This document shows positions 24,201-27,200 of a stretch of 64,000 nt of DNA, piece after piece. The notes beneath the pieces are model-generated. The model saw only the letters and a program-made list of their open reading frames with translations, ran no database searches and was not told the DNA's origin. Position numbers and translations under genes: made by a program. Location of the stretch: the NCBI GenBank assembly GCA_904063045.1, contig CAJFCJ010000009.1:1302968-1366967 (forward strand). Direction: 5' to 3'. This stretch comes from Dimorphilus gyrociliatus. Its lineage: Eukaryota > Animalia > Annelida. Within the stretch, counting starts at the first letter, position 1; every line of letters begins with the position of its first letter.

Positions 24201-27200
24201 TATGAACTTTATTCTTAGAATCCAAAGTAGGGCATTTTTTTTTGCGAAAGACCAATTTGAGCCAGAAGCAACTTCGAATTAAAAGGTAAGTTAAGTGCCA
24301 ATGCCAATAAAATATCTTCATGCACAAAAATCTTTTTTGTATGATTTTGTCTGTCTACTTCAAAATCTATTCTAACAAAGTTTGTGCACTCTTTTTCTTA
24401 CACTATACTTTATATAAATAAAATTTGTTTTAACAAAAAATAAATTGAATTATTGAAAATCAATTAACAACAGGGGAGTTTAACGGCTGAAGAAGAAGCG
24501 GCTTTGATGGATAATTATCATTATACTGGGGCAACAACGAATATACACCCTTACTTATCCCAAATGGTTAATTACGCACAGCCCGTAAAGTTTTCCGGTT
24601 TTGACATTGCCGAAGGTATGTAATTTACTATTTTTAAACGAATTTCGGGCACTAAGACGAGTTATATACGCAAAGAATATTTTTTTTTTTTTGACAACCG
24701 ATTTATACAGAGTTAAATCTTCATTGTCAAATGTCATCATTTAATGAATCAACCGGTTTGGGATACCTAAAAACCGGAGCTATCGAATTCGTAAAGTATC
24801 CTTCGATAGTTGAAGATTATTACTTGTAGTTCCCCTAAGCATGTTGCTCGACTCAAAACTCGTTTTAATTTCCTACTTTTTATTTATCTATTTATTTATT
24901 AGATAGGAGAGATTTTTTTTTTCAAAAATACTTATTTTTGAGCAGAAGAATTTTCTTTTCCAGTTTTCATTAATTTTATTTTGATTCTTTGTTTCCTAAC
25001 CAAATTTCAGAGCGTAACATCCATCACAATATGTCGTCTTTCTCCGAATCCCATGCGCTAGGCGTTTTGAAAAATGGGGCTATTGAATTCGTCAAGTATC
25101 CGCTAGATTTGTTTAATTTTTTTTATTTATTTTTGCGCATGATGTCGTTTAGTTCGTCACTTGTATTTGACTGTCATTTCTAGTTTATTGCCTTTGCTCT
25201 TTCATAATTCATTTATTTATTTTTTGGCATGTTGATGGCAGTCGATCGTTATTTATTTATATATCCTACAGGAATAAATAGACACTTTCACATGTCATCT
25301 TTTAATGAGACTTCGGCACTGCAATTATTGCTTAAAAATTCCTTATCACCAATGTTGTGGTCCAAGTATCCTTTGCATGTTGCATGCTTTCATATTTGAT
25401 TTTACTAGTATATTTCTATCACGAAATTTTGTCCCGTATTTTTCCTGAATTCAAAATTCTAGCTATAATAAGCGTCAGATGAGCAGAATATATCCGAAAG
25501 GAGGAAGAGTAGATTCCAGTAATTATATGCCTCAGGTAGAGTAGTTAATGTTAAAAATCCTACAAAGAAAATATAATAAGATTTAATTTTGTGAAAAATT
25601 TAGATCTTTTGGAACGCAGGCTGTCAAATGGTTGCCTTAAATTTTCAAACCCCAGACCTGGCTATGCAGTTGAATCAGGGCAAGTTCGAGTACAACGGAA
25701 ATTGCGGGTATTTATCATAATTTTATCTCGCCAGGAAAACTATTTCGTAGAATATCTAATAATACATACAATATACCTTGTTCTTCTTTCGATCAGTTTT
25801 CTGCTCAAGCCTGATTTCATGCGACGACCAGATAGGACTTTCGATCCTTTCTCTGAATCGCCTGTAGATGGCGTAATAGCCGCCACTTGTTCTGTTCAAG
25901 TTATTTCGGGCCAATTCTTGTCCGACAAAAAGATCGGAACGTACGTTGAAGTCGATATGTACGGACTTCCGACAGATACTATTCGAAAGGAATTTCGAAC
26001 TAGAACGGTTCCAAACAACGGACTTAATCCGGTGTATAACGAAGAGCCTTTTGTGTTCAGAAAGGTTTATACAGTGTTTTATGTCCATTTAACTTGTTGA
26101 TTATTACCTTTTATAAATAATTATAGGTGGTGCTACCGGACTTGGCTGTACTTAGGATTGCTGTATTTGAAGAAACCGGTAAATTGATTGGACAACGAAT
26201 TCTGCCTCTTGATGGCCTACAAGCCGGTTACCGTCACGTTTCGCTGAGGACTGATGGAAACTTTCCTTTGTCTTTACCCACGGTCTTTTGCCGATTTGTT
26301 CTGAAAACATATGTTCCCGACGGTTTAGGAGATTTTGTCGATGCTCTTTCCGATCCCCTTCAGTTTGTTTCAGCAGCAGAAAAACGAGCACAACAAATGA
26401 AAGGTATGGGGATTGATGAGAATGATATAAGCGACGTTCCTGTGACGTCCGGTTCGAAAAAAACTGATAAGAAAGGCGATAAGAAAGATAAAAAGAAAGA
26501 AGATGCAGCGCCAAAGAAAAGTGTTCCAGGAGAGCAAAATAGTGCCAATGCTGGTACAGGAGGAAAAAACAACGACAAAAAGGATGAATTGGGTTTTGAA
26601 CCAATTAGGACCGAGACTCTGAAAACCGATAAAAAATTTATCAAATTGCTCAAACAGCAGGGAAAGGATATGGAGAATTTGAAGAAGAAGCAAAATAAGG
26701 AACGTTCGGCGATGCAAAAGCTTCATTGTAGCGCAGTGGACAAAATGGTAGCGGTGCATGACAAGGAAAAAACTTCTCATGAGAAAAATCTGGATAAAGT
26801 GAGAAAAAAGAACGCGTAAGTGTCTCAATTAGTTTCTAAATTTAAGGTGTAAAACCTATAAGTAGGTGTTGTGAAAATTTTTAAACAAGTTTATTTATTA
26901 AGAATATATTTTTTGCATTGTTTTTATCCATTTATTCGCAGGAGCGAATCGTCCATAACAAGATTAGCAGCATGTTGCAGCGCTCGAATGCCGTGGGTAG
27001 ATCATTGGTGTTTGCCTCTCTTCCTATTTTTCTTTTTCTTTTTTTTTAATTGAACTCAAATTTCTTTTTTTCCTTTAAAAAAGTTCAGATTTGTGTGGCG
27101 CCTTTTGGTTAAAAAAAAATTTGAATAATATCATAATGCTGTGTCGGTTCTTTAACTCACCATCTTCTTTTTTTAATCAATTTATAGTTTCCTACCTCTA

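Follow-up and report, generated by a model that had tools for sequence, protein, structure and literature searches.

The question raised by this locus is how a gene with three tandem copies of an exon might be made to place exactly one of them in each mature mRNA. The window analysed here, a stretch of 64,000 nucleotides from contig CAJFCJ010000009.1 of the annelid Dimorphilus gyrociliatus (genome size 77.9 Mb), carries an orthologue of PLCB4, a phospholipase C (PLC) beta gene, on its + strand at ~21.2-27.8 kb, and three alternative exons (A, B and C) lie one after the other within it. With a probability of roughly 0.7, we read these as three mutually exclusive exons that were made by duplication beside an ancient U12-type intron and are wired by the incompatibility of the major (U2) and minor (U12) spliceosomes. 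An earlier note on this stretch, made from the sequence alone, had proposed such a cluster, and its coordinates, exon lengths, phase, donors and acceptor were reproduced to the base by sequence reading and in-phase translation. The cluster and its splice sites are arranged as follows:

24474..24615, + strand: constitutive upstream exon (translation, RNA), covering the last part of the X-Y linker and the beginning of the Y region; 1 nt of a codon is left over.
24616..24621, + strand: U2-type donor GTATGT with G at -1, used in the RNA join 24615/25011 (runs X1 and X2) and kept in a close relative (L009).
24711..24795, + strand: alternative exon A, 85 nt, seen in the RNA join 24795/25463; counterpart of exon 1 in Paralvinella and Batillaria.
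24796..24803, + strand: U12-type donor of exon A, GTATCCTT, with A at -1; the next 60 nt are 98% identical in L009.
24992..25000, + strand: TTTCCTAAC, 11-12 nt upstream of the exon B acceptor and 100% conserved in L009.
25011..25095, + strand: alternative exon B, 85 nt, seen in RNA joins; counterpart of exon 2 in Paralvinella and Batillaria.
25096..25103, + strand: U12-like donor of exon B, GTATCCGC, with A at -1, deviating at +7 and +8; identical in L009 and used in RNA.
25272..25365, + strand: alternative exon C, 94 nt, a divergent third copy found so far in Dimorphilus only.
25366..25374, + strand: U12-type donor of exon C, GTATCCTTT, with two GCATG motifs directly after it; conserved in L009.
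25441..25450, + strand: U12-like branch-point motif TTTCCTGAAT, 12-21 nt upstream of the acceptor, its adenosines 13-14 nt from the 3' splice site.
25461..25535, + strand: shared acceptor AG (25461-62) and constitutive downstream exon, reached by RNA joins to 25463 and matching Pfam PI-PLC-Y.

Each alternative exon has AG before it and GTATCC after it (donor stretches GTATCCTTC, GTATCCGCT and GTATCCTTT). Their lengths (85, 85 and 94 nt) are all 1 mod 3, their phase is identical, and their translations are homologous peptides that share an invariant MSSF(N/S)E; being tandem, homologous, similar in length and alike in phase, they have the form by which mutually exclusive clusters are recognized. 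Exactly one exon keeps the reading frame, and inclusion of none, two or three breaks it, as the earlier note had stated for any two exons together. In a three-way alignment with 50-nt flanks, AAGTATCC at the donors was the sole invariant block beyond the coding core. GTATCC occurs 14 times in the window against ~11 expected per strand, which is about background; therefore the signal of the cluster is not the frequency of this motif but its position at all three donors and its conservation in the relative, amid intron sequence that is only 59% identical (50 nt just before the branch motif).

The proposed history and mechanism follow from this order of sites. An exon just upstream of an ancient U12-type intron would have been duplicated, giving a U2 donor, then three repeats of U2 acceptor, exon and U12 donor, and finally a U12 branch site and acceptor. 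The major spliceosome would join the upstream exon to one of the alternatives and the minor spliceosome would join that exon to 25463, and either skipping all three or taking two would need a hybrid U2/U12 intron. Since a U2 donor cannot be joined to a U12 acceptor, nor a U12 donor to a U2 acceptor, the productive path would contain exactly one exon. Out-of-frame products would probably be cleared by nonsense-mediated decay (NMD), with frame and NMD serving as a backstop. We infer from the types of the splice sites that spliceosome incompatibility enforces exclusivity; which exon is chosen would probably be set by intronic regulators, for which GCATG motifs and the ultra-conserved flanks of exons A and B are candidates.

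Evidence for the use of the exons comes from assembled RNA contigs of four runs, in which rare isoforms drop out and depth is indicative only. Two of the runs are metatranscriptomes (X1, coral; X2, marine) that are 95-100% identical to the window, and two are from named relatives (X3 and X5, ~93-96%). RNA pieces of the constitutive upstream exon (24472-24615) were present in all four. The upstream exon is joined to exon B (24615/25011) in X1 and X2; exon A is joined to the downstream exon (24795/25463) in X3 and X5; and exon B is joined to it (25095/25463) in X3 and X5, and in X2 via a loose end whose sequence is that of the first part of the downstream exon. X3 and X5 also have loose ends of 27 nt at 24709 and 25009, which correspond to the end of the upstream exon of the relative, and hence to upstream-to-A and upstream-to-B joins. 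Exon C is represented by a 124-nt contig in X5 that spans 25270-25365, at a depth of 35 (compared with 66 for A-specific and 54 for B-specific sequence). Among the joins listed for the contigs of the four runs, none was A-B, B-C, A-C or a skip of all three exons. The earlier note had expected joins from 24615 to every alternative exon and from each of these to 25463, with no A-B or B-C joins even under NMD block. In this RNA, taken without an NMD block, the joins of exons A and B are as expected and no A-B or B-C join is listed; exon C is seen only as an exon-sized piece. The three exons are thus real, used, same-phase homologues.

The intron after exon B is retained in X1 record 4 (to 25156), X3 record 13 (25066-25299) and X2 record 9 (25148-25361). 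In X1 record 4, the upstream U2 intron has been removed and the intron after exon B is still in; an 879-nt U2 intron of the gene has zero depth in X3. Retention after exon B with the upstream U2 intron gone fits slow minor splicing.

The typing of the splice sites bears out the earlier note's claim of U12-type donors on all three exons and of a U12-like branch site at the acceptor ending at 25462, together with its two caveats, concerning the exon B donor at +7/+8 and the dual character of TTTCCTAAC. The donors of exon A (GTATCCTT) and exon C (GTATCCTTT) match RTATCCTT in full, and the donor of exon B (GTATCCGC) matches at 6/8 positions; none of the three differs in L009. At the nine other RNA-supported donors of the gene, position -1 is G in six cases, C in two and A in one (GT at 23277), and all nine begin with GTA, GTG or GTT, none with GTATCC; the three cluster donors have A at -1 and no G at +5. 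The shared branch motif, TTCCTGAAT, matches TTCCTTRAY at 7/9 positions with adenosines 13-14 nt from the AG, and no pyrimidine tract lies between it and the acceptor. No U12-like branch motif was found at the acceptors of exons A and C. Before exon B, TTTCCTAAC makes a good U2 branch site and looks like a U12 site as well, and this acceptor is used with a U2 donor in RNA. The layout is consequently that of the JNK type, with the upstream donor and internal acceptors U2-type and the internal donors and final acceptor U12-type (the exon B acceptor being ambiguous).

The genome also holds the minor spliceosome's small nuclear RNAs (snRNAs), whose absence the note had named as fatal to its proposal: U12, U6atac, U11 and U4atac are present in one copy each, all above the Rfam gathering score (bit scores of 91.7, 87.6, 113 and 63.9). 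Their pairing motifs are intact (U11 starts with AAAAAGGGC, U12 has GAGTAAGGAAAA and U6atac has AAGGAGAGA). When the whole genome was searched with a strict pattern for short U12 introns of canonical type, there were 14 matches versus 3 in a reversed control, a number that fits a reduced set of minor introns and is too small for a species-specific scoring matrix. D. gyrociliatus has lost ~80% of its minor introns, mostly by deletion, and the leech Helobdella has lost a similar share, mostly by conversion to the major type (Larue and Roy, PMC10639083). Weak or off-consensus branch sites are found also in the minor introns of mouse Plcb2 and Plcb3 (PMC8848931).

The assignment of the gene to the PLCB4/norpA orthology group is supported by domain architecture and by best matches; the phototransduction role that the earlier note attached to the enzyme is putative. 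Pfam domains found in single exons occur along the + strand in the order PH_14, EF-hand_like, PI-PLC-X, PI-PLC-Y, C2 and PLC-beta_C. The X-box exon, which is 76% identical to fish PLCB4, was searched against 1.8 billion representative proteins with subsequent cluster look-up, and the closest full-length proteins were PLCB4/norpA orthologues, the best of them named beta-4 or norpA. The public model, DgyrCDS7559 (CAD5118883.1; 657 aa; window 21242-24826), is identical to the window; at its 3' end it reads past the donor of exon A into the intron and reaches a stop, and is therefore truncated exactly at the cluster. In addition to the introns of the cluster, at least nine further intron junctions in 5 kb of this gene are supported by RNA (introns mostly 58-126 nt, the longest 879 nt), and the earlier note's description of a genome that has otherwise shed its introns is wrong for PLCB4. 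Other alternative splicing was also observed in the gene: a 51-nt cassette exon in the C-terminal region (26942-26992) is both included and skipped in RNA contigs, and RNA joins use alternative donors 99 nt apart in the X-Y linker (23595/23694). A TGCATG motif is located ~20-25 nt upstream of the acceptor at 27232.

To what extent the arrangement is old was assessed at the orthologous site (phase 2, between FVx and YNKRQ), for which eight further loci were compared in addition to L009. The note had called for a survey of orthologues, and this one found two-copy U2/U12 wiring in both Paralvinella and Batillaria and a U12 intron in Nematostella:

Nematostella: one exon; textbook U12 intron, GTATCCTTT ... 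TTCCTTGAC, 12 nt, AG.
Paralvinella palmiformis (annelid): two exons, both 85 nt; upstream donor GTAATG, exon donors GTATCCTTG and GTATCCTTA, both carrying GTATCCTT; middle acceptor U2-type, CCTTAAC ~10 nt before the shared AG.
Batillaria attramentaria (gastropod): two exons, both 85 nt; upstream donor GTGCAG, exon donors GTATCCTTC and GTATCCTTT, both carrying GTATCCTT; middle acceptor U2-type, CCCTTAAC ~13 nt before the shared AG.
Helobdella (leech): one exon; U2-type intron, GTTAGT.
Styela (ascidian): one exon; U2-type intron, GTAAGT.
RefSeq locus L006: one exon; U2-type intron, GTCAGT.
Gryllus (cricket): one exon; no intron.
Meloidogyne (nematode): one exon; no intron.

In Paralvinella and Batillaria, a CCTTAAC-type branch site is present at the shared acceptor only, and the middle acceptors are clean U2-type sites. 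The counterparts of the branch motif in Nematostella (TTCCTTGAC), Paralvinella (CCTTAAC) and Batillaria (CCCTTAAC) lie 10-14 nt from the AG. Judged by these sequences and by positional homology with an undoubted U12 intron, the intron after the cluster is shown to have U12 ancestry. The three lineages with more than one copy have all kept U12 signals, and the five that lost these signals have one copy each, a pattern that agrees with a functional link between copy number and intron type.

Pairwise identities of the encoded peptides associate exon A of Dimorphilus with the first exon of Paralvinella (21/27 residues) and Batillaria (22/27), and exon B with the second exon of Paralvinella (20/27). 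Since A thus pairs with the first and B with the second exon elsewhere, these short sequences suggest that the A/B duplication predates the annelid-mollusc split. Exon C is at most 12/27 identical to exons of other species, and neither a counterpart of it nor further copies were found by low-threshold tblastn in the eight other loci (Nematostella, Styela, Helobdella, Paralvinella, Batillaria, Gryllus, Meloidogyne and L006). Like that of D. gyrociliatus, the public annotation of Paralvinella is interrupted at the cluster, where the gene is split into models of 662 and 590 aa (L011 10001-49817). The converted U2-type intron of Helobdella (L012 6225-6330) is almost entirely a (GT)n/(TG)n microsatellite of ~110 nt. 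A PLCB4 model of the fish Sinocyclocheilus that scored above self was considered as an instance of double exon inclusion and rejected, as the model contains an identical large duplication.

Conservation within the cluster was examined against L009, an 11-kb genomic Logan contig of a relative that is ~86% identical over the region and carries the whole gene. This relative keeps all three exons, the three GTATCC donors, TTTCCTGAAT, the GTATGT donor and five GCATG motifs; its exon A has an in-frame 3-nt insertion. Exon B is 100% identical, with zero differences, the 60 nt before the exon B acceptor are 95% identical and exon C is 85% identical. Synonymous (pS) and nonsynonymous (pN) codon divergence separate the exons further. 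The constitutive exons have pS 0.47 and pN 0.045 (upstream) and pS 0.46 and pN 0 (downstream), compared with pS 0.056 and pN 0.032 for exon A and pS 0 and pN 0 for exon B. Hence, from the near-absence of synonymous change, exons A and B are under strong RNA-level constraint, which is frequent in regulated alternative exons. Exon C, with pS 0.50 and pN 0.056, is on these values an ordinary protein-coding exon under purifying selection. The intron flanks of A and B (24711-24860 and 24951-25115, exons included) are nearly unchanged relative to L009, like the exons themselves.

Two kinds of candidate regulatory element were recognized around the alternative exons:

24839..25386, + strand: five GCATG motifs, at 24839, 25137, 25227, 25375 and 25382, all at most 150 nt downstream of an alternative exon.
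24779..24812, + strand: predicted hairpin with a perfect 10-bp stem and the U12 donor of exon A in its 14-nt loop.

The GCATG motifs, which we take to be candidate Rbfox-type sites, number five in this zone compared with 0.18 expected (Poisson P ~1e-6), and 5/5 are kept in L009. They include a tandem pair of TGCATG, 10 and 17 nt past the donor of exon C. Enrichment is weaker in Paralvinella (L011 39807+35/+56) and Batillaria (L013). Exon choice is probably factor-driven. The hairpin is identical in L009, which precludes a covariation test, and was not seen in Paralvinella or Batillaria; any function of this predicted fold is speculative.

The alternative exons would alter the catalytic domain of the enzyme. 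The segment encoded by the cluster aligns to residues ~611-639 of PLC-beta3 in solved structures, where the Y half of the catalytic barrel begins. All three isoforms retain the invariant SSF, a motif whose serine presumably contacts substrate in PLC-delta1, and the next ~18 residues vary among them. The segment of exon C is three residues longer and ends in ...MLWS, as opposed to ...IEFV. The isoforms of this Gq effector are thus predicted to differ in the first helix region, where the catalytic Y region begins, in three versions, and are likely to differ in regulation.

Several points weigh against policing by incompatible spliceosomes. The RNA consists of contigs made without NMD block and with rare isoforms dropped, leaving the absence of double inclusion unproven. 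The donor of exon B is the weakest of the three, mismatched at +7 and +8 to both U11 and U6atac, and the shared branch motif is likewise off-consensus. The minor spliceosome may even make an A-to-B join via TTTCCTAAC, to judge by its resemblance to a U12 branch site. The comparative sample is small, with three lineages that have a cluster and six that do not, and the single exon of Nematostella illustrates that a U12 intron does not need duplicates. Frame incompatibility by itself, moreover, could make mature mRNAs look exclusive. This last point underlies an explanation that we consider unlikely while giving it some weight, namely that exclusivity results from frame, NMD and ordinary regulated choice, the U12 signals having been copied along without a policing role. 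Every inclusion count except one is out of frame here, as noted, and 60% of human mutually exclusive clusters rely on lengths that are not multiples of three (Hatje et al., PMC5740500). The GCATG motifs and ultra-conserved flanks also hint at factor-driven choice, and Nematostella again has the intron without the duplicates. Nonetheless, wherever the exon is duplicated, each copy has retained a U12 donor and the last acceptor alone has a U12 branch site, and every lineage in which the intron was converted or lost has a single exon. D. gyrociliatus has, furthermore, kept this minor intron in triplicate despite losing ~80% of the others (PMC10639083).

It is far less plausible that the GTATCC donors are weak U2-type sites served by the major spliceosome and that their U12 resemblance is vestigial. 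The off-consensus exon B donor and branch site could be read in this way, and conversion from minor to major introns is common in annelids such as Helobdella (PMC10639083). However, the cluster donors lack G at both -1 and +5, and GTATCC does not vary among the three copies or in the relative. The branch motif has been conserved at its distance of 13-14 nt and is not followed by a pyrimidine tract, the full set of four minor snRNAs is intact, and orthologues carry consensus U12 signals. Competing RNA structures, with docking site and selector sequences as in insect Dscam or 14-3-3zeta, appear marginally less probable again. Such structures might account for the RNA-level constraint on exons A and B and their flanks (pS 0.056 and 0 versus ~0.47 in neighbours), and a local hairpin does enclose the exon A donor, yet pairwise duplex scans of ten blocks against shuffles returned none that was better (best z -1.4), the inverted repeats of the region are not kept in L009, and the fold of the whole region has a z of only -1.5. 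The least probable of the explanations is that exon C is a decaying pseudo-exon. This copy is the most divergent, sharing 10/27 residues with A or B, and no counterpart was found in the eight other loci, but its frame is open and in phase, its pS of 0.50 contrasts with a pN of 0.056, its donor is conserved, and an RNA contig has its exact exon bounds. The reading retained is, accordingly, that of three exons probably kept exclusive by U2/U12 incompatibility.

If this reading is correct, the cluster may bear on the persistence of minor introns. One possible, though doubtful, extension is that the duplicated-exon wiring is the reason this minor intron survives, in that conversion or deletion would break the selection of one exon and the intron would be locked in. 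Were that true, lock-in would explain the triplicate in D. gyrociliatus, the duplicates in Paralvinella and Batillaria and the single exon in the leech; such clusters would act as a selective anchor that holds the whole minor spliceosome in genomes undergoing compaction; and exons A and B of PLCB4 would have separated no later than in the common ancestor of annelids and molluscs. The idea offers a testable rationale for particular minor introns resisting loss in a genome that discarded most of them. The orthologues amount to a natural experiment, in which lineages with the minor intron converted or lost have one exon and lineages that kept it have several (Nematostella, with one, excepted). 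Dimorphilus is also a tractable system, being a culturable animal with a 78 Mb genome and cluster introns of <250 nt. On the practical side, annotation pipelines evidently overlook U12 donors as well as the isoforms, as illustrated by the D. gyrociliatus and Paralvinella models that break at the cluster.

Elsewhere in the window, eight tRNA-Cys(GCA) genes form a tandem array at 800-2151, with a spacing of ~150-320 nt (mostly ~165 nt), apparently between exons of a minus-strand gene that is aspartate-aminotransferase-like. At 29907-30680, the listing of open reading frames includes two similar translations of EB1 CH-domain exons.

The idea that spliceosome incompatibility acts as an enforcer rests on very few cases, essentially vertebrate MAP kinases, and the present locus involves another gene in another superphylum. 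The exclusivity of JNK exons 6a/6b is credited to U2/U12 incompatibility (Letunic et al. 2002, as cited in PMC6865273, where such clusters are reviewed). U2/U12 mutually exclusive clusters are known in human MAPK8/9/10, MAPK14, CEP170 and CRTC1 (Hatje et al. 2017, PMC5740500, Appendix Fig. S18), and PLCB is absent from the supplements of that survey of human mutually exclusive exons as far as these were available. PLC genes are enriched in minor introns, with 60% of the family being minor-intron genes (PMC6865273). Our searches of the literature on U12 or minor introns in norpA, Plc21C and PLCB4 and on mutually exclusive PLCB4 exons did not find this arrangement described, and the study 'U12-type Spliceosomal Introns of Insecta' does not mention PLC.

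Exclusive splicing as such has a precedent in the same orthology group. Drosophila norpA has mutually exclusive exons 4 and 4A in its N-terminal region, which give tissue-specific enzyme subtypes. The Dimorphilus cluster resembles these in being a probably exclusively spliced set in a PLCB4/norpA orthologue, and differs in affecting the Y box and not the N-terminal region; the norpA orthologue of the cricket is without an intron at the cluster site. U12-type GT-AG introns with off-consensus branch sites also occur in two PLC-beta genes of the mouse, Plcb2 and Plcb3 (PMC8848931), although exon duplication is not reported there and the position of the intron may differ. The closest likeness is to MAPK8/9/10, MAPK14, CEP170 and CRTC1, which share tandem same-phase duplicates beside a GT-AG U12 intron and hybrid introns between the copies; MAPK8-10 additionally share the position of the U12 site 3' of the alternative exons. 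The locus is a new and evolutionarily old case of the JNK-type U2/U12 mutually exclusive class. It differs from the vertebrate JNK type in the gene concerned, PLCB4, in its occurrence in annelids and a gastropod, and in being three-way in Dimorphilus, with three copies and not two.

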